From Orbicella franksi (taxonomy: Eukaryota): a stretch of DNA of 64,000 nucleotides. This document shows positions 519 through 35,493 of the stretch, in pieces; the first letter of the stretch is position 1, and each line of letters opens with the position of its first letter. A model generated the notes under the pieces. That model ran no database searches, was not told where the DNA came from, and saw nothing but the letters and a program-made list of their open reading frames with translations. Where the stretch lies: the NCBI GenBank assembly GCA_964199315.1, contig OZ116712.1, positions 18,042,001 to 18,106,000 of the forward strand, in the 5' to 3' direction. The translations under genes were made by a program, and so were the position numbers.

Positions 519-3500
519 CATTTCTGGTCTATGAGCTCCAGGTCCTGGTTTCAAGGTTCTATCGCCAGGTGCGTAGTTACGAGCATTCATTGAAAAGATG
601 GGCTTCCTATCTTTGTAGATATTCGGGTCAATCACTTTATATGTGCCTGGTCCCGGGGTCTGTAGAGAAATGGGAAAATTCACGTTCATCACTAGGAGTA
701 AAAAGATTGAAACGCCATGACAGCAGGATCAGTGTTAGAAGTTAAAGGAGCTGTGCCACAGTTTGTGCATCTTGAAAAATTTAGCCTACATTTTTCAAGT
801 TCATTGCTTGTAATCTGTGTCAATCTTCTCCTTCATTAACCATCCTTGTTTCTTTATGGTTTATAATTGTTACTTCTTTAGTGTTTTTCTATCTTAGCAA
901 ATTATTATTGTCAGATTTCCTTCAATTTAAAGGTAATTTTGCATATGGCCAAAATAACTCGCAATACCGTCACTGTACTCCTTTACGTGGCAAATGAAAC
1001 AGAGCTTCTCCACACTTTATCAGATCTTCTAAACAGCTCACCATTACCCCTTAACATTTCCAGGTATAATAAGAGTTGGGAACAAAAAACACAGTGAGCT
1101 CAGTCAACGCACAAGTCAACTTCTGTATATGGGGTTCAGGGCCACCTTAAGTTTTCGAGAATTTAAAGTGGTACTGACCCCATGTACGTATATTTTTTTA
1201 ATTTTGCCTATGTTACATCTTATCCTGCTAATCAAAATTCCATAATAAAAACCTGGGGGTCACCAATCTCGTTTTAGAGTTAATTTACGTTAAAGTTAAA
1301 ATAATGGTGTCTTTAGTTAGTAGGTCATAGCGCTGCTATGGTAGCCTATTGTGCCACAAAATTGATAACAACACATTTGTCAATGATTGGGCAGTTTGTT
1401 GATACCATGATTGCAGCATCAACTGATAAAGAGTGCTTATAATGACTCATCGAAATCTAAGTTTTGGAAACTACTGAAAATTGATGCCAGCCACCTTAAG
1501 CTCCCTATTAGTAATTTGTCTCCAGACAAGAGATTTTTATGTTTTATCTTCAAATTTTGCAGTATTATCTAGACCTTTGTACCTGGCAGTACACAAACCT
1601 TTTGCAAATCCTCATGAAAACTTCCAATCTTTGATCTACTTGTCATGGAGAAAGCAGCTGAGGACTTCTTTCCCACAGACTTGGGGCCAAGAATCACAGG
1701 CATGTTGTAGTTATTTGGAGCTGGATTGTTGTCGTTTTTGCCGTAGGGTGTGCGCAGTCCAAATGAATAATGTGGAGGAAAGGGATGCTTCTGAACAGGA
1801 TTCTTCTCAGCTTGATAATCCCCTTTGAGAAAGTACAACAAATCACAACAAAGTTACTGTGAAACTCAGAAAACTATGAACACCAGGAATACCTATGGAA
1901 TGTTATTGTGTAGCAAGGAAAAAAGCCAATTAGGTAGATGTGGGAAACCAAACCGCAAACAGTAGTGGTAATAAGCCATTTCCAAGTTGGTATTTTCTTT
2001 CTGTTTCAAAACGAGTTCTGGAAATGAGTTTGATTTACGAGACAATGAACGTGAAAGAAAATCTCATTTCAAAAATGAAAGGTTTGTACCAAGACTCATT
2101 TTGAAAGAGGTAAAAGTAACTTGGAAATGGCCCATTAGTTTGTGGTTTTGGGGTTTCTTCGAGTGTCCTGCCAAAATCAAATCAAAGTGTTCATAATTTT
2201 TTGAGTTTCACAGCAATACATGTACAACCCTGTCAGTAGAGTCTTCTTCGATCTTCCTAGAAAAATGGGTAAGAGGAAGGAGACTCTATGAGCATCCTTG
2301 CAATGCTTTGATTTGCCCCTCATCCAAGACAAATGACATGTCAGCCAGTTTTGAGCTGGTCAAATTGGTTTTCTACTGCTGTGCATGATCACTTGCAGCT
2401 ATTGCTGACTACTCCCACACTACGTTGCTAAAAGTTAATCAACAAATTGGCAACTGCTTTGCTTTCATACAAAGTCTCTGAAAAAGATTTTTTGGGAAGA
2501 TCGAAGGAGACTCTGTTTGCAGGGTACACATATGCTAAAATGACCCACAAAAATTTAGAAAAACAAATTAGAGCCTAAGATGCGGTTCAAAATATAAAGA
2601 TGAAGATGATGATCACAGTTCCAGAACTTGAGACTCCAGGCTCCATGAATCAACAGTAAAGCTTTCCATTCAACCAAAAATTCCTGAACTTTCAAAATGG
2701 AATGGTACATAAATTTCCTGGGAAAGTTATTGGCAAACCCACAAATTGCAGAATTTCCAAAATTCACACCATTCAATTGAAAATTCTGGACAGAAAATTA
2801 AATGGAACAGTCAAACCCCTATTAAACAGCCACCCTATTAGATGACGAGTAATTAAAGTCCCTATCAAGGCTTTTCTATTGTTTTTACCTCTGTTAAATG
2901 GCCAACCCCATTTAAAGCAGCCACTATCTATTTCCCTGAGGGTGGCCGTTTAATAGGAGTTGAAAAGTAAAAAAAAAATATCCCACAGTTTGGAGTTGTC
3001 TTCTTTTCCGTACAATCCAGAAAATGTGTATTTGCCAGTTTTCCAGAAATTCAAACCGGAATGTTTCATTGAATTTAAAGTGCAGAACATTTCTATCTGG
3101 GAAACCTTGGCTGTGCAGCTCTACTGCAAAAGGATACAATTTCCATACCCATGAAGAGTCTGAAAATTGTATGCATAATTAAGTATTCAATAATTAATAT
3201 GCCCAAAAATGGCAGGAACATTTGTTTCTCAAAGGCAAGAAAGTTATTACTAAACATAAGGAAAAACCTTATTTACATTTTGTAAATGAAATATCTGACC
3301 AAAACGTGCAAACACCTTGCCATAAAGAAGGATTTGGTCCAAAACTTTGGGCCAAATAAGAGAACAAACACGTGAATTTTCCCAAAAATATTTGGTATTT
3401 GGTTTCGTTTTGCAATCTGATTAGCTCCTGGTTGTTCTAAATGTTTCGCACCGTTCGAGTTCGCATCCAACTTCTCGATTTCTCATCGACCCAAGCAATA

Positions 3501-25464: not shown

Positions 25465-27704
25465 ACCGAGCGAGCATCATCAACATTTGCAAGAAATTCT
25501 TCTGATGGCATGAGAGCACGGAATATAACTGCCTTAACAAACTCGACGACCATAAACTGGGATTTGAAAAAAAAAATTAAGAGGAAAAACATTCCTGAGT
25601 GAAAACAATGTAGATTCGAACGAATAGCAGTTTTTTACTGGCTCGACGCCGCCATGAGGAGCGACCGTTAGCGATAATGGCGCGCGTGCTCCTAGGCTAA
25701 AACAGGGCTGAAAGCATGCCGCGCGGTCTTCACAGATTGTCAAGCTTGATTTTTAATGTTGATTCATCCTGATACTGCTATTTAAACAACTCTTCATGAA
25801 TGAAATGAATGCCGACCATAATAATCATCTAGTAATAAATATTTTTTTCCCACAGACGAATGACTTGTGTTGAGTTTGATCTGTTTCCAAGCTGTTTCCA
25901 TGTAATTCCTCCTATAGGCTAACCTCGATACCATGACCTTTTCATGGGAACGAGGTTGGCTGCGGAGTCCAACAAAACCGCCTGTTTTTTTTTCACTTCC
26001 TTGCATTCAAGAGAAAGTATAGGAATAGAAATGAAGGGATTTGATTATGCAATCGGCCTACCTACCATGCCAGGTGCAAGAGATATTTTAGAACGCAATG
26101 ACCAGCTGATGGCAAACCATGGGGGATGCTCGGGTATATATGATAATGCACGAAGGCGACCACCTTTCTAAGGTTGGAAATTTGGGATCTGAGGACTGAT
26201 CTTGCGGTTAGAGATTTTGTAGCGATTTTTTGGGTGAAAGATTTTGTTCAGGGTTTTTTTAGGTTTTCTCTCACTTTATATAGCAAGCAATTGTAATTTC
26301 ATCAGTTCGGCATTTATAGACGTCTCGGACAGATGCAAATTTAGGCCTCACGGAATGGTTTGCAGTACATCAGCAGGAAAAAATTTATGACATGCGCAGT
26401 TGAACCGTTTCTCGGAAACACTTGCTCCAGTCAAATTATTGTAAACTTTTTGGCTGAATATCGTCTTCCGACGCGAAGTTTTTGGCCCATAGACGTGCTA
26501 AGAAGGAAGAATGGGACACGGCTGAAAGTTCTACCGTTTTAATTTTTTCTCTTTCGTCGCGTAAGTGGCAGAAATACGTATTTTTTTACTTTTTTGCCGT
26601 CCTCAGCGGGCAGAGGCGGTGATGTCGAAAAACCGAAACGGTGAAATTGGAGATTTGCCTTCTAGTTTCCTGGATAATGAAGGTCTGGAGGCCTAGACTG
26701 ATTGCTCTTGAAGTTATTTCAACTTTTTCCCCGCGCGTCCAAGATATTGTAGTGAAATAAATATTGAATGCACTAAGCGCACGGAGACAGCTTGGGAGAT
26801 GTTAAATTCGAGGCTACGAGAGGTGAGTTCACGCTCCATTCTTTCAGGTAAATGCAAATAGTTACCCCCTGCTAGTATTGATTAGTAAGCCACAACAACT
26901 GTTTGGTATTCCAGTAATGATTTTTTCCAGCATAATAGGCACTTTCATTTTTAATGTTCTGAATAAAGGTGGTCTTGTTTAGACATCCCGCTGTTGATAA
27001 CATTTTCATATTTTGGGAGGGAATAAAATTATTCAGTCTGTTGTGCGTTTTATCAGTTACATCAGGTTTTAATAAACACTGCTCTGCTTTACATTCCACT
27101 ATATTAGGCTACTTTCGATTCCTTTCTACCTTGTTTTTTCTCTCATGCAACATGGTACCTCATGTACATTAGTACACTGCTTTATGTTATTTTATCTTAT
27201 ACAAGCTACACTCTTGTGTAATTTTAAGCAAACTTTACGTTAAAAATTACCAATACTTACATTTTTACTGTGAAAATTATGCGGCTTACTTATCATGCTA
27301 GTTTTAAACAACTGCCCCATATGAATGATAATGAAAAACAATTATGTATGTTCAAATCCATTGTAAACTGCCGACTGTACAACTTTACAGCAATCATGCA
27401 TTATAATCACTCAGAAGTATTTTTATATTCACATTCACTGTAAACTGCTGACTGTACAACTCTACAGTAATCATGCATTACATTATAATCACTCAGAAGT
27501 ATTTTGATATTTATGATCACTATTATTTACACTGCAACAATTTGTATTTTACAAATGGGTAAGACTCCCCACAAACTAATTACTTTATCTGAATCTCAGA
27601 TAGAACATAGTTGAAGTGCATTTGTTTAGTATGAAATTGTTACAATTGAAAATAATCTTTTTGTGAAAGTACCTTTTTAGAAAGAGCCACCCCATATTTG
27701 ACTT

Positions 27705-30700
27705 TCATTCTTCTTGTATAGGAAACTGGGTGGTATGCATGTCCAATGTGGATGGAAGATCAATGTTCAAAGACTGTACAATGTTTGGCAGGTTTTGTAC
27801 GAAGAACTGGCATTCTCTTGGTAAGTCATGTGTTGAAAGTTCCTGTCCATAACCCCATACCTCAATAGCTGCAAGTTGCATTAGAGATGGAACCTTTCCA
27901 GCTGTTCTGAATTCTGTAATGACAGTTGGCCGGAATGACCTCTGGTTTTCCAATTGTGATGTGCCTTTGGTGGAAGCTTTCCACTGCAGTTCAAGTTTGC
28001 GGCCTTCAGCTTTGAGGGACTGGATCATGCTTGAGGTGTTGCTATTTAGTTTCCTTGCTTCCCAAGCTTTGGGATATACATCTTTTGCAGTCAGTGGCCC
28101 ATGGTTTTCACATTTTCGGATCATATTTAACTTCTTTCTTGCCTCTTGCAAAAGGTCTGAGGTCAGCATGTTTGCATATGCCTTCATTCTCTCTTCATGT
28201 ACTTCTCTTGCTGCTTCAGTGGTGTGGTTGTTGTTTTTTCCACTGTGAAGTATGTTCTCAACAAATGTTATCAAGGCTTGTTTTGACAGCTCTGACATGT
28301 TGTTTTGAAGATAAAGTTGTGAAAGGTTGAACTGCCTTTCAGCAATTACATTGTTCACAGGAATACTGAAAATGTGTTTGGCATAGAACTCGAAAAGGTG
28401 GGGGTTAGCTTCTTTACTGATGAGACTACTCTGTGGTGATGTTGCAACTCTTTTGATATCATTCAGTAGTTTTGGTTCCTTCAAGTTCCAGATTTCTGCC
28501 CATTTAACTAAACCAGTTCTGTCCTTACAAACCAATGTGTGAAGATTTTGTCCATGGACATAGAAATTTTGCACTGACCTGCTTTCTTTTTCTCTTTCAG
28601 TTGACAGCATGACAGGAATTTCAAGAGCCTTCAAAACAGAATACCAGAAAGAACTTTGGTATCTTGGATCAGCTCCAATTCCAAATAACTTGGGGAAGGA
28701 CAACCACTCTGATCCATGGTCTTTAACAACTTTAAGTGCTTCTTGCAACATTGGCCTCTGCACTTCCTGACGAAAGTGGTTGATGGCTGCAGGATCCTTC
28801 AGTGACATCTTCATCTGCTGCTCAGTTAAAGGAAAATATGCTGATGGAGACATCAACATTTTACTTAATGTTTCATGATGTTTAAGGACAGTTGCTGGCC
28901 ATAATCGTGCCAGGTATCCACTGGAGAAGCCAAGTTCTTGATCTGTTGCTTGTGATGCATTGAGAGATGGAATAAGAAACTTGTCAAGAAACTCATACAA
29001 AAACTTAATTTCCACTTGAATCATTGGACAGGAGCTCAACTTGATAACATTCTGCCACACTGTGTAGTGGCTGTCTGACTTTGGCATTCTTTCCAGGACA
29101 CTCTCTCCAAGTTGTAGACAGGCTTTACCATACTTCAAGTGCCATTGAAGTGTCTCATAATAGTATGTCCACCTCGTGTCAATAAAGGACTGGGGAAGGG
29201 GTGGCTCTTTACTTAAGATTCCTAGTGATACATACATTGATTTGTACTGACTTGGGCGTTCATGATGAAGCCAAGATACCTTATAAAGTAGTTGCAATAC
29301 ATGGTTGTTATTCATGTCACCCTTGGCCCCAAACCCAGCTTGGCACATCCTTCTTAACATAATGTTCAGGACGTGGGGGTAACATCCAACAAAGAACATG
29401 TCCTTTTCAAAAACCCTTGAATTATTTGCTATTAAACCATTAGCCTTCCCCTTCTGGGTTGAGGCATTATCCCCAACCAAACCTGAAACATTAGTTATGC
29501 CATATTCATCATGAACAACATGATATTCTACATCAGACTGGTGTTTTCCTGACCCACTCGCTGTCAAACTGTTACCAAGGACATATGCCCTGGGTTCATT
29601 GATCTCTGGGCACCAGGTGTGGACACCTACAATGTGCCGCTCTTCGCCACCTTTGTTGGAGTCATCACTCCATACATGGAAATCATATTGGCTACTTGCA
29701 AATCTTTTGCGTAATATCAGTTTATCGGCCTCCCCTAATAGGATATTCCAGTCTGCCAGTGTGGATGGCGAGACAACAACATTTGTTGGGGGGCTACAGT
29801 TGAATAAAATACTGAAAATTAGATGTAATGCAATGGGTGTCTTTTGGCTAGAAAGCAAACATGCATGCTGTAAATATCTCATGCAGGCCATAAACATGAC
29901 TGTTCTACGATTTGTTCCATTTTTGCCATGAGAAAATGTGTCCACAAGGGAATACCTAGGTTTCTTTACATTTTCATCATTTTCCTTTAATTGTCTTTTC
30001 AGCTTTGTGGAAGCAGATTTTGTCCCTCGTAGTTTGTTACCGACTTGTTTCGTTTTCAATTCAGTAGACTTCAAAGTTCTTTCACGCTTCTTTGCTTCAC
30101 TTTGTAACTTCAAGACATCTTTCCTTAGGTCATTGTTAATTCTTCTCAAAAATACTGTAAATATGAAAATGATAAATAGGGCCTTACAAGTTTTACTTGT
30201 ATTTTGTTTTTTTTTTTAAACAATAAATTTAAGGATAGAAAAACTTAAGTATACAGTGTACTTGTGTGGATTTCTGAAAGTTACTGTTTCCTCGGCGGTC
30301 CGCTTATATCGAGTCGAGATGTTGACTTGCGAATTTACAAAACGAAAGGCAGACAAACCCTTTGGGGAAAAATTGCATTCTCACAAAATTTACGACTAGA
30401 CTAAAATTTGTCGGTCGCTTTTGGTTAAAAGGCTGTTAACATGAACCTACGAAAGTACCTGAAGTACTGGCGTAATACACGAAAGCCGGCCGGCCACAGA
30501 AAATTAAAAATAACCTAAATATCTATCTAATTTTGAACATTTTGCAATGGTTCGAGCAAGCAGACTTTTTTAAAAGAGCATTTAGCTGCGATTCAAATCT
30601 TGTTTACTGCGTACCCAGCTATGAAGGAGCCCTTTTTTTGCGAAGCGGTGATATCCAGTCCAGAGTATGTTATTAAATTTTTGTCTGCTTCGGAACTCGG

Positions 30701-31279
30701 TGTCCAACTCGATCGCCAAAATCGCCGCTTCAAGTTTGGTATTTTGACACAGCCGTGTCCTATGTGACCATACCATTTAGTTTGCTTCATTTTACAAACT
30801 TTTTAAAACTATTTTCGTTTTAAGTATTCCTTGACCCCTTGTAGTGGTAATATATTATTACGTTAAATAAGTTTGAGTTTAAAAAATTTAGTGACAACAT
30901 CGAAACTCGCATTAATTGACATCGCCACGAATTTTTAATGTATTTGTGGGAAAGCAGCTTTTACTGGTAATTCAGAAGCTTTAAGAAACACTTTTTAGGA
31001 GATTTATAGACGGCTTGATGACTACTTGAGCAGACACCTACCTATACTTCGTCGTAGAGTTTGTATTGTCCTCTTCAGGCCGGCACTTTCACACTGTAGG
31101 CGTTTACAGTCTCGCTCGAGTTTGTCGATTTTTTCCTCGCTCGACAGGTTTTTCAATTCTACTCGGACACTGCTTGCAGCTATTTTTTTCACGTTTTCAT
31201 CGGTAATTTCTTTCTTCTTCTTTACTGACGGTTGATTTAACCGGGAAAAATGACTGCCGTGAACTCTTTTTCGTCCCAT
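27705..31279 (-). CDS. hAT-like DDE transposase, ~895 aa, 2 exons
   Basis: Exon 1 31279-31042 (MGRKRVHG..., donor G|GTAGGT, phase 1) joins exon 2 30154-27705 (acceptor atttacag, phase 1) in frame. The uninterrupted ORF has WSDDS (first Asp), VGDNAS (second Asp), CYPH (CxxH), DTRW and NVIAERQF (Glu). Exon 2 is well supported; the exon 1 link is inferred. Confidence 0.8.
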
Positions 31280-31446
31280 CTGCTCGACATTTTGTTGCAA
31301 TTTTAAAATAATTTGCTTGAGTGAGCTTGAATGTAAACATCAGCGAGTTGAGCCCGCGTATCCCTACGAACAGCAGTTTCCCAAAAAAAAGTACTCTGCG
31401 CATGTCACAAAAAATTGGGCATCAGCGGTCCAAGGGGTAGGATACC

Positions 31447-31646
31447 NNNNNNNNNNNNNNNNNNNNNNNNNNNNNNNNNNNNNNNNNNNNNNNNNNNNNN
31501 NNNNNNNNNNNNNNNNNNNNNNNNNNNNNNNNNNNNNNNNNNNNNNNNNNNNNNNNNNNNNNNNNNNNNNNNNNNNNNNNNNNNNNNNNNNNNNNNNNNN
31601 NNNNNNNNNNNNNNNNNNNNNNNNNNNNNNNNNNNNNNNNNNNNNN
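31447..31646. other. Assembly gap (200 N)
   Basis: Run of exactly 200 N. Confidence 1.
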
Positions 31647-32471
31647 GTTCCGTGAGGCCTAAAATTACATGCAAATGACAATGAGAATTCCTGTTTTAGC
31701 GGAAGGAACTCTCCTCTTGATGCTTCGGACTTTTGGACTCTTGGGGTTACGTTCTGGGTTTTTGGATTTTTTGGGTCTGATGGAACCTTTTTGGGGTCCC
31801 ACAATGTGATCTCCCCGTTACTATGGTATCCGAGTACCCCTAACGCCTCTTCCACCCCTTTCCCCCAACCGCCTTCCCTAGGATGGTGAAGCTCCAGCTT
31901 CTTGAGTACAACACTCGCGTTGTTAAAAGCCTTTTTCAAATTTCCATTATCTTGGTCTTTTAAGTGTCTACTTTACCCGCAGACGCGAGCAAGCTAATGC
32001 ATTTTCTGTATCTTACAGCGCGTATGTCTGGAAGTGATAGCACGTCAAGCTGTCTACTTTTGCGTGAAAATAAATGCGTGGTTTATTTTATACGTGCGTA
32101 AATTCGCGAAATAACCTGAAGCGTTATTATGCGTGGGTTATAATTGTTGTCTAAGTGTTTCATCTGCTTGCATCTGAGGGAAAAAGCCGAGTCACGTCCT
32201 GGAAAGCGAAACGTAATCTTCTCTATTTTATCTTCGGCGCAGTCTTCGGCATGGACTCGCAAAGACTCCGGGCGACTCGGTAAATGTTTCGTCATTCGGA
32301 AAAAAGTGCGAAGCCTGGGAACGAGACCGATGGCAACAAAATAACCATCGAGACAAGTTCGGCTGCAACAGATGTTTGTCTACGTTCGGAAATTCTCTCA
32401 CAAGTTCAGTTTCAAACTCGTAAACTAACATGTTTTGATGCATGCGGAACGTTTAGTGTCATAGGGGAATA

Positions 32472-35400
32472 ATGGCTGAAGGTGGTAGTCGGCCTTGGTC
32501 GCGCCATCGAAACCGCCGCCGACAAAACGACAGAGAAGGAAGGGAAAATGAAGAGATTGACCGAGATCTGCTCAGAGTTGTTCTTAGCGATTCTGAAGAC
32601 TTCGTTCCTGAGGACGTAAAAAGCACATCGTCTGTTGCCTGTAGCTGTGCTTCAGATTTTCAAGAGGAGCAAACTGGCTGTAATTCGTCTAACGTGAAAA
32701 GCTGTCCGAACTTGAGCGATTTGGATCCCGAGATTCGTTCTCGCAGCTTTCGTTGGTTAGTCAGGCAAGTTAGTCGTCGGAAAAGTGCCAAGGAGTCTGG
32801 AAAACGTCCCTCTGATAAGAATCGTAGAAGTGACCGGGACAAGAATGGCCTTAGCTACCATGCTCGATGCCTACAAGAAGCGAAACGAGTCAGGCGAGCG
32901 GCCGAGTTGGAAGCTATCAACCGCAGGACGAGACCACAGCAAGCTCGGCGAAGAAGGCCCCTGAGTTTGCTTAACTTCAGGTCCGGAAACGATGAACGAG
33001 GAGTGCAGGATGCGGGAAGAAAGAGATTTTCGTTCTCTTGGGGGTTTCGACAGGACGATTCAACCACCCAAGTTGATGAACGTCGCGATCGAGCCAACAC
33101 AGTGCCCCCAAGACCGCTGTCACCAACACCACCGTCAGATGACTCTCCAACTGACGATGGAAGAACGAACGCGATGAGCTTCGATGACTTTGAGAGAAAA
33201 AGAAGAGAAAAGGCTCGTTTGAAAGCAGCGCAACATAAACTGGAGTATTTCCTCATCAGCGACATCGTTTCCATCACAAATTGCCCGTGGTATTGGGGGA
33301 AAATTAATAGGTTTGAAGCGGAAAAGGTGAGAGCTTTGTAACTTTTAACTTCATTAACCCGAATGATACAAGATGTTGGTAAAATTTCATTATTGTCATT
33401 GTCAAAAGTGCGGGAAGGTGTTACGCTTTTGTTTGGTTAGAAAGAAAGGTTAACAGTGGTATTTCATTTTCATTAGTTTTTGCGATTCATATCATACAAA
33501 CTGGATAGTTTAGAGAACGTATTTTTTAATATACGTGGGCCATGCAGTAAAAACACAGTAGCTACGAATAAGAAAGGTTATGCTCGAAAATAAATTGATT
33601 GTAAAAGGGCAAAACATTTAAATTAGGTGAAAAATTGATGAGATGTTTAGCTGTTTTAGAAGCAGTTATCCTATTGTTAAAATGCCCCGGAAAAAAGACC
33701 AAGTCGTGAGATGTCAATTGGCACCTGCTTTGTCTCCAAAACCTGACACTTTCTAAAACGCATATTTTTATGAGTAATTTTGTCAATAGATTGTTACTAA
33801 TGCATTGATCAAATTTCTCAGATGTCACGACAATTAATTATAGGAGGTTCGGTTTCATGAAGCAGCAAGAATTTATAGAAAAAGAAAACTACTTACAGAC
33901 TTTTGTTATATATCATTATATGTATGTCAAGCTGGTAGGCAGCAAATAAAATTTGGAAGCACTTCAAGAATGACATATATGGACAGCTTAATTTGTGGAC
34001 ACTGCCTGCAACAGTCAGGGAATTTTGGTCTAACTGCAAATGCAAACATTATACCATGAAAATTTTGCATAAGTATTTAATCACTAATTCTGATCTAAAA
34101 TGAGTTCTTGTACATTTTGTGAACTGTTTTTCAATATGTAATTTTGCTTCAAAGCTTTTCTGCATACATCTCAGAGAATGATAAAATAATGCAAGTGGCT
34201 TTCTCAGGCCTAGGTGTTAAGGAAACTATATACGCCTACGTTAAGAACTCTGTCAGTTTACAAATTACTTAGTTTTTCCACGCCTAATGTTTGGACTTAA
34301 TTTCATGTTTTGACCACAAGAAAGTTTAAAAAGACAGTTTGAATTGCCTTATAGTCTTATCAGTAAAATTCATAATTCCGATTGGTTCATCTTACATCTG
34401 GGTTGTCACCTAGTTGAAAAATATCAGCATAGGTGTTTGGTTATTGTGAGTATGCATGTATTTCTCTTTTTGTTTTTCTAAACCAAAAAAAGTTGCAATT
34501 CTGAAAAAAGTTTCAACAAATGTCTTGCATTATCCTATTTTTGAGCCAGTCAGTGATAAATTTCACTAGGACTTTGCACCTCTAGATATTTGAACACAGC
34601 TGTTTCAAGAAATATTGTCAGATTCAAGCATCAAGCTTATGTGACAAGACCAAACAATCAAAAAACTATTGACTAGGTCATATATTTTACGCATGCACTT
34701 TGTTTTGACTTCCAAGAGATCGTTTGTTTTGTACATTTTTGCAGGACTTCAGGGTTTTGCCGCAGGTTTAGCAGAAATAGCATGTTTAAAGTAAAAACAA
34801 GGACAGAAAACAAGTTTTTATTGCTGCTTTATGTCATCAATATTTTATTAGCACATATATTGCTTTTCATAATATTTTTCTTCTAATCCACCTTTTTCTC
34901 ATTACAAGTGGGCTTAGTGCTTTCATCTAGAAATTTTCACTGCAATGAGTGTTAATATGCAAGCTTTTGCAAGAATAAAACCAGATGGACTGTTTGATAA
35001 ATTGAACAATTATTTATTTTTACCTCAGATACTGGAAGGCTTTCCTGATGGAACATTCCTGTTACGTGACAGTGCGCAATACCACTATCTGTTCTCAGTG
35101 AGTTTTCGTAGATACTCCCGAACATACCATGCAAGGATTGAACAGTGGAAGCACAGATACAGCTTCGACAAACCAAGTGACTATTCATTCTGTTCAAAAA
35201 GTGTTTGTCAGTTGTTACAGCATTACTCTCGTGCAGAGCAATGCATGTATTATGAACCTCTGCTGTTGAAGCCGCTACACCGAAGCAATCCAGTGTCCCT
35301 ACAGGATCTCTGTCGCGCAACAATCTGTAGTCAGACAACTTTTCAAGGAGTCAGCGACCTTCCTGTACCGAATTCTATGAAGATTTTCTTGAGAGAGTTT

Positions 35401-35493
35401 CATTACAAAGTTCCAGTGAAGAGAACTGAAGAGAAAGGTACTCAAACACCAGCACCACGAAAGAGATTCAGTTTTTCATTCCACAGAGACTAG
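32472..35493 (+). CDS. SOCS4/5: Suppressor of cytokine signaling 4/5-like (SH2 + SOCS box), 439 aa, 2 exons
   Basis: Exon 1 32472-33326 (AAG|GTGAGA) and exon 2 35029-35493 (cctcag|ATA), phase 0. SH2: [53 protein letters not shown], the SOCS4/5-type pattern. SOCS box: SLQDLCRATI...LPVPNSMKIFLREFHYK. Confidence 0.92.

Follow-up and report, generated by a model that had tools for sequence, protein, structure and literature searches.

A probable hAT-type transposon of divergent lineage with 5-bp target site duplications in the coral Orbicella franksi

Introduction

Transposons of the hAT superfamily usually generate target site duplications (TSDs) of 8 bp, and groups that duplicate 5, 6 or 7 bp have been named hAT5, hAT6 and hAT7 (PMC12730594). 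The description of hAT5 is attributed to Kapitonov and Jurka (2007, Repbase Reports 7:1188, as cited in PMC12730594). The group is stated to have been first found in invertebrates, with the Nematostella genome paper cited and a Hydra protein presented as its exemplar; its hosts are given as invertebrates and fish (PMC9004415). Here we describe a transposon in a 64-kb stretch of Orbicella franksi DNA (hereafter, the window, in whose positions all coordinates of the element are given). An earlier note, made from the sequence letters, had proposed an apparently intact hAT-like element with a non-canonical 5-bp TSD at this locus, and had pointed to subgroups with short duplications, hAT5 and hAT6; the hAT5 group does exist in print (PMC12730594, PMC9004415). 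The 5-bp duplication is thus non-canonical but not new, and cnidarians are among its known hosts. We read the element as an autonomous cut-and-paste hAT transposon, belonging to a divergent, hAT5-like lineage that makes 5-bp rather than 8-bp duplications, and place the probability of this reading at about 0.85.

Results

The element is flanked by 5-bp target site duplications

Excluding the TSDs, the element spans window positions 26342-31661 (Table 1). The terminal inverted repeats (TIRs) are perfect over 14 bp and reach 18 nt if one mismatch is allowed. The 14-mer has two matches in the whole window, both at the element ends, against a chance expectation of 0.01. Genome-wide (497 Mb), the 18-mer ends were matched exactly 49 times, compared with 0 for a reversed control, which corresponds to a family of about 25 copies in the source genome.

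Duplications were tabulated for 19 copies with both ends; L003 and L015 were left out, the right end of the latter not being found. A perfect 5-bp direct repeat is present in 17 of the 19, the window copy included, and the remaining two differ at one base. The duplicated sequences observed were AAATT, AATTT, GAGTT, AACTT, ATGTT, GAATT and AAGTT. They conform to a palindromic target consensus, AANTT, in which the first A is kept in 17/19 copies, the second in 18/19, and each T in 19/19.

The unoccupied target was recovered from public sequencing runs. A DNA contig from run X2 (organism A, depth 5.7) joins position 26336 to position 31662 with five shared letters, skipping 5325 bases to give the sequence cagatgc-AAATT-acatgc. 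The same joint appears in X9, a poly-A RNA run of organism B, in a contig of 2778 nt and depth 108. The single AAATT of the empty site confirms the element boundaries and the 5-bp duplication, and shows that a different individual or haplotype lacks the insertion, for which this locus is polymorphic. The 8-bp duplication expected of a hAT element is replaced here by one of 5 bp, and the empty site, together with the 5-bp repeats of the 17 copies, refutes an 8-bp reading.

Three related elements were compared. A coral element with 78% identity (L035) carries the TIR TAGGCCTCACGGAATG, the same as that of the window element, together with the same GACATGCGCAGA subterminal pair, and has AAGTT on both sides. 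At 35% identity, L033 (TIR CAGCCCTCACCATC) is bordered by ACATT on both sides, and at 38% identity, L034 (TIR TAGGGCTCACGGATG) is bordered by AAATT and AATTT, which match at four of five positions. These two distant relatives retain YAG..CCTCAC ends. With exact 5-bp repeats in L035 and L033, a 4/5 match in L034 and the shared YAG-S-CCTCAC ends, the 5-bp duplication looks like a trait of the lineage rather than of a single family.

The perfect 14-bp TIRs and the AAATT flanks proposed in the earlier note all lie where it had placed them. Its non-canonical 5-bp TSD is upheld by the copy table, by the exact empty site and by the exact duplications of the 78% coral element and the 35% relative. The note had also envisaged collecting further copies by their TIRs and finding an empty allele in other individuals: the former search returned about 25 copies, and among the 19 tabulated the duplications are of 5 bp, perfect in 17, rather than of 8 bp or TA; the latter allele is present in the X2 and X9 contigs.

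Inside the TIRs, a pair of inverted 12-mers, TGACATGCGCAG, occupies nearly symmetric positions, 48-59 bases from the left end and 55-66 bases from the right when the Ns of an assembly gap are ignored. This pair is a putative transposase-binding site. Two imperfect tandem units of about 80 bp, in direct orientation, are located at about 27345-27520, within the 3' non-coding region.

The copy family is young

At least eight further full-length copies were identified, differing from the window copy by 0.04-1.04%. Full copies measure 5.13-5.16 kb, apart from one that an insertion nested within it has brought to 5.96 kb. Between the window copy and L001 there are two substitutions in 5120 bases. 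Both exons of the transposase gene (described below) are open in the window copy and in six others, hence in at least seven; exon 1 of L005 is interrupted by a stop, and L007 is frameshifted. The family also comprises about nine derivatives of 3.24 kb from which element positions 1445-3220 and 795-917, and with them the catalytic core, are missing, one of 2.0 kb and one of 2.4 kb. These deletion derivatives were mapped and are also seen as DNA joints in public runs; being internally deleted, they would need to be moved in trans. The earlier description of the element as young and possibly active is supported by the near-identity of L001, the number of open copies (at least seven), the insertion polymorphism and the spliced RNA joint presented in the next section. 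The family was active very recently and is probably still mobile.

Two observations on individual copies are added here. L009 (G000:C6:30215200-30221159), which is otherwise open, harbours a nested element of about 800 bp after element position 267. The nested element has G-run terminal repeats and an 8-bp duplication, CCTCAGCG, and is an ordinary insertion of the 8-bp-TSD kind. In the region G000:C8:19694568-19941146, five decayed partial copies are spaced about 50 kb apart on one chromosome, an arrangement that looks like a tandem segmental duplication carrying one old copy.

A two-exon gene encodes a protein of 895 residues

The single-frame open reading frame (ORF) on the minus strand, 27705-30149, comprises 814 codons, and an in-phase acceptor upstream sets the start of exon 2 at 30154. 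The two exons (238 and 2450 nt) together make 896 codons with the stop, and hence a protein of 895 amino acids, with no internal stops; the stop-free transposase of about 895 residues anticipated in the earlier note is thereby recovered, as a two-exon gene on the minus strand. A contig from the RNA run X9 carries the joint 30154->31042 (CT..AC), which corresponds to the predicted intron to the base, and the identical exon junction is found in the NCBI Montipora gene model P0006. The depth of X9 is zero in two intron bins (30216-30607) and 26-75 in exon bins, while DNA runs over the intron have a depth of 24-95.

The suggestion that the element is apparently intact holds for its coding frame, which is open, but not for its intron, from which 28 bp are missing after position 30171, 16 nt upstream of the last intron base (30155). 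The segment is present in all eight other full copies, so that the deletion is limited to the window copy. This copy may still be mobilised in trans.

Table 1. Positions of the element, its transposase gene and signature motif codons within the window
Feature	Position	Strand	Basis or remark
Left TSD copy, AAATT	26337..26341	.	TSD table of 19 copies; empty-site joint 26336->31662
Terminal inverted repeat TAGGCCTCACGGAA, at the gene's 3' end of the element	26342..26355	+	Motif count versus chance
Non-coding region, 1.35 kb, downstream of the stop codon	26356..27704	-	No ORF of at least 80 amino acids
Subterminal motif TGACATGCGCAG	26389..26400	+	Inverted partner at 31396-31407
Exon 2, 2450 nt, 816 codons and stop	30154..27705	-	RNase-H-like DDE core with large helical insertion
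E604 codon (AERQFN 603-608)	28338-28340	-	
W327 codon (R326-W327)	29169-29171	-	
H259 codon	29373-29375	-	
C256 codon	29382-29384	-	
D227 codon (GDNAS 226-230)	29469-29471	-	
D162/D163 codons	29661-29666	-	
Intron, 887 nt, GT..AG	31041..30155	-	RNA joint; Montipora model P0006
Exon 1, ATG at 31279, 79 codons and 1 base (238 nt)	31279..31042	-	Basic stretch, then predicted coiled coil
Subterminal motif, inverted partner of 26389-26400	31396..31407	-	
Assembly gap, 200 N	31447..31646	.	Other copies lack any sequence there
Terminal inverted repeat, at the gene's 5' end of the element	31648..31661	-	Motif count versus chance
Right TSD copy, AAATT	31662..31666	.	TSD table; empty site

Run X9 additionally contains two plus-strand GT..AG joints, at 26820-27720 and 27819-28600. 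They indicate a spliced RNA that begins in the left end of the element, runs antisense to the transposase gene in its 3' part and has no long ORF on reading by hand. Either a regulatory antisense function or read-through transcription of a host gene at a different copy could account for it.

The predicted fold of the transposase resembles that of Hermes

All searches and structure predictions were made with exon 2 (814 amino acids) or exon 1 separately rather than with the joined product, and motifs are numbered in the 814-residue exon-2 frame. In an alignment of 13 relatives the motifs ADDSNKG, GDNAST, GCYPHxLN, ETRW and NNVIAERQFN are conserved, and they follow one another in the order seen in hAT proteins: D, D, CxxH, RW and E. 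The motifs named in the earlier note were all located among them.

The AlphaFold2 model of exon 2 has a mean pLDDT (predicted local distance difference test score) of 73.6, with most of the core at 85-93. The predicted structure has the features of the Hermes fold, namely an RNase-H-like DDE core with a large all-helical insertion. A Foldseek search with this model placed chains of the Hermes transposase in 11 of the 12 top ranks listed (E 1e-9 to 3e-6), followed by ISCth4 (3e-3) and the P element (7e-3). VIA-align, a method independent of Foldseek, superposed Hermes (PDB code: 8edg, chain A) over 396 residues with a Z-score of 19.6, a root-mean-square deviation of 3.6 and 14% identity. The next best score was for an integrase core (Z 10.1), with the P element at 7.9 and RAG1 at 6.8. 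The nearest shapes in the ESM Atlas belong to the Dimer_Tnp_hAT, DUF4371 and FAM200-ZBED5_RNase-like families, with template modelling (TM) scores of 0.52-0.61; feature-based Atlas matches, which score below 0.8, agree with hAT families. The model thus supports the assignment of the protein as a hAT-superfamily transposase of a divergent lineage, and the hAT-like character claimed at the outset is sustained by the fold, with Hermes ranking first, and not by the standard sequence models.

Outside the core, exon 2 is predicted to open with a long helix of about 57 residues, which reads as a coiled coil. The part encoded by exon 1 is basic, with only two cysteines and two histidines and no finger spacing.

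The C-terminus bears a module of the pattern VPSLMxLAALxVWxYGEELPxHDLPRECxxFxQNLP...EE (about 27708-27890, minus strand). Three relatives share it, the most distant of them with 35% overall identity, and the sponge relatives lack it. The pattern recalls an Elongin BC box followed by a cullin box, in a part of the structural model that is poor (pLDDT 28-63). Pfam gave no SOCS_box match on this module at E <= 10. A host ORF at 34945-35490 on the plus strand, 3.3 kb to the right of the insertion, matches SH2 (26.1 bits) and the SOCS box (37.5 bits), and by these domains is a SOCS-family gene; BLASTP found no similarity between it and the transposase C-terminus. Neither search, by Pfam or by BLASTP to the neighbouring gene, matched the module to a SOCS box.

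Relatives in corals, a calcareous sponge and a chytrid

By a word search, 17 relatives were recovered in corals (Montipora) and in Sycon ciliatum, a sponge; no relevant domain was recognised in any of them. An exhaustive profile search of 1.84 billion representatives returned 267 proteins at E <= 0.001, mostly fragments; those with names come from Oculina, Stylophora, Sycon and a chytrid, and no named protein of Hydra or Nematostella is among the matches. One distant relative has a weak match to TNP-like_RNaseH_N (E 0.017), below the cut-off.

The Stylophora pistillata gene models P0015 and P0077, annotated as 'Zinc finger MYM-type protein 1' and 'TNF receptor-associated factor 6, partial', include fragments of transposases of this family. 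Both are probably chimeric annotations across transposon insertions.

The insertion lies in transcribed host sequence

In the 2778-nt poly-A RNA contig with the empty site (depth 108), the flanks 26100-26336 and 31662-31950 are contiguous, which shows that the host sequence around the element is transcribed. The host sequence offers no convincing reading frame across the junction, and the insertion is accordingly taken to be in an untranslated or non-coding transcript.

Discussion

Strength of the hAT assignment

Several observations weigh against the reading of the element as an autonomous hAT transposon with 5-bp duplications. Pfam returned no match on either exon at E <= 1, and pieces of the protein and distant relatives were likewise below threshold; a search of the PDB by sequence, both single and profile, found nothing relevant. 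Dimer_Tnp_hAT (PF05699), the C-terminal hAT dimerisation domain, reaches 14.2 bits exactly over the E motif, below its cut-off of 21.4, and has no match with the whole protein. Aligned by hhalign with four Pfam-positive hATs of the same genome, the D, D and CxxH motifs are paired at a probability below 1%, which is consistent with kinship and goes no further. Neither a BED zinc finger, which many but not all hATs have at the N-terminus, nor another known DNA-binding domain was found by Pfam in exon 1 or the N-terminus of exon 2. Given the absence of a Pfam, PDB or strong hhalign match, hAT membership is carried mainly by predicted structure. At the termini, hAT repeats generally start with YARNG, and TAGGC agrees at only four of five positions; among the relatives, TAGGG agrees at five and CAGCC at four. 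As the TT at TSD positions 4-5 is invariant (19/19), an asymmetric model, in which the left TT belongs to the element and the TSD measures 3 bp, would predict identical sequences, and was rejected on symmetry only.

On the side of expression, the shorter side of the splice joint covers 28 letters, and the run from which it comes is from a differently labelled organism. The 28-bp deletion is near the acceptor and may affect splicing of the window copy. Raw RNA reads of X23 (organism A) could not be placed anywhere, and so provide no test either way. Finally, none of the reads or contigs of the public runs extends, at this locus, from the sequence before the assembly gap into the unique right flank.

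It is possible, though we consider it the less probable course, that the same element represents a separate deep-branching hAT-like clade outside Repbase hAT5, in which the 5-bp TSD was gained independently or is ancestral. The protein escapes Pfam, unlike ordinary hATs of the same genome, which score 29-33 bits on Dimer_Tnp_hAT. There are just 267 relatives among the 1.84 billion representatives, and the named ones are from scleractinian corals, Sycon and a chytrid, none belonging to the hosts in which hAT5 was described, Hydra and Nematostella. In place of the expected BED finger, the N-terminus has a coiled coil. However, most database proteins are unnamed and transposon genes are often masked from annotation, which makes the lack of Hydra and Nematostella names weak evidence. 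Moreover, the element combines the two features by which hAT5 is defined, a hAT-type transposase and a 5-bp TSD, and hAT5 is known from cnidarians. In its most developed form, which we hold just as tentatively, the proposal would be of an old hAT-like lineage, distinct from Repbase hAT5 and living in corals, calcareous sponges and a chytrid. Such a lineage would be marked by a strict AANTT target, conserved termini of the form YAG-S-CCTCAC, a coiled coil replacing BED and, in corals, a conserved Elongin-BC-box-like C-terminal module, and would be mobile today in a coral that builds reefs.

A second alternative, which we regard as very improbable, concerns the assembly. The 200-N gap is situated 15 bp inside the right end, and this position, together with the want of a bridging contig, might indicate that the right end and its flank were mis-scaffolded, so that the window copy would not be one complete element. 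As described in the earlier note, the right TIR is beyond the gap and the subterminal 12-mer at 31396-31407 before it. The gap is 168 nt upstream of the ATG, and therefore no reading frame crosses it. In 18 of the 18 other copies, the 40 bases that precede the gap (..GGATACC) continue into G+TTCCGTGAGGCCTA with zero letters between, and these are the same letters that come after the gap in the window; contigs from two public runs continue past 31446 likewise into the terminal repeat. Without its Ns, the window copy measures 5120 bp and L001 5148 bp, the difference being the single 28-bp intron indel. The right junction without the gap would read ..GGATACC -> GTTCCGTGAGGCCTA-AAATT-ACATGC. Mis-scaffolding is further opposed by the identical AAATT at both flanks, by the direct adjacency of these flanks in the empty-site contigs of two runs, and by the post-gap contig, which begins with the last 15 bp of the element. 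From the zero spacing in the other copies and the matching length, the gap is best read as an assembly break at a repeat boundary, probably an artefact with little or nothing missing.

The proposal that the element has GGCC..GGCC ends with a TA duplication, raised as an alternative in the earlier note, or belongs to another superfamily with short TSDs (Transib, CACTA-Mirage-Chapaev), is refuted by the empty site and the fold match: TA does adjoin GGCC at both ends and Transib, too, makes 5-bp duplications (2-5 bp for that clade; PMC12730594), but the empty site holds one AAATT and no TA, the variable TSDs GAGTT, ATGTT and GAATT are duplicated whole, the termini are TAG..CTA and not CA..TG, and RAG1 aligns with a Z-score of 6.8 against 19.6 for Hermes. 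Transib itself, with RAG1 at this score and termini that differ from CAC..., agrees in TSD length alone. Kolobok and the P element were also rejected, there being no THAP match, a P element Z-score of 7.9, and a TSD of 5 bp as against TTAA (Kolobok) or 8 bp (P element).

Proposed mechanism and significance

For a hAT transposon of this type, the following cycle can be envisaged. The 895-residue protein would be made from the two-exon mRNA and would bind both the terminal repeats, over 14-18 bp, and the GACATGCGCAG motifs in the subterminal regions. Excision would be carried out by a DDE active site formed of D162/163, D227 and E604, with C256/H259 and W327 acting as in hAT enzymes, and reinsertion would proceed via 5-bp staggered cuts at the palindromic AANTT.

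To our knowledge, there is little evidence of DNA transposons that are mobile at present in corals that build reefs. With its near-identical copies, open frames, spliced transcript and polymorphic insertion in transcribed host sequence, the element is a candidate active coral transposon, and the presence or absence of its insertions could be a useful marker in studies of coral populations. Should a natural copy turn out to be active, it may serve as a gene-transfer tool for cnidarians, as other hATs do elsewhere. The transposase, resembling Hermes yet cutting with a strict 5-bp stagger at the palindromic AANTT, would offer a natural comparison for the question of what sets the duplication length. 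The family also reveals a gap in the Pfam coverage of hAT transposases.

Comparison with known hAT systems

Among described groups, the element is like hAT5 in having a hAT-type transposase, short terminal repeats, a 5-bp TSD and a host in Cnidaria. Set beside hAT5, the window family has traits of its own: it is invisible to the Pfam hAT models, has a coiled-coil N-terminus and no BED finger, possesses a conserved C-terminal module (in corals) and targets AANTT.

The resemblance to Hermes of Musca domestica (PDB codes: 8edg, 4d1q and 2bw3) lies in the DDE core, which in both is split by a large helical insertion domain. The D-D-E spacing of 64/377 is similar to that of Hermes, 68/324. The window protein is about 280 residues longer than Hermes, with extra N- and C-terminal regions. 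In Hermes, unlike the window element, the duplications are 8 bp long and the N-terminus carries a BED domain.

The Buster/Charlie type of hATs and their domesticated kin (ZBED5, ZMYM1, GTF2IRD2 and ZNF862) provide the nearest shapes in the Atlas, the TM scores given above extending over 480-590 residues. They differ from the window protein in that the latter has no sequence-level Pfam match to DUF4371 or FAM200-ZBED5_RNase-like. Members of these groups are either elements with 8-bp TSDs or immobile host genes, whereas the window element belongs to a multi-copy family that appears to be mobile.

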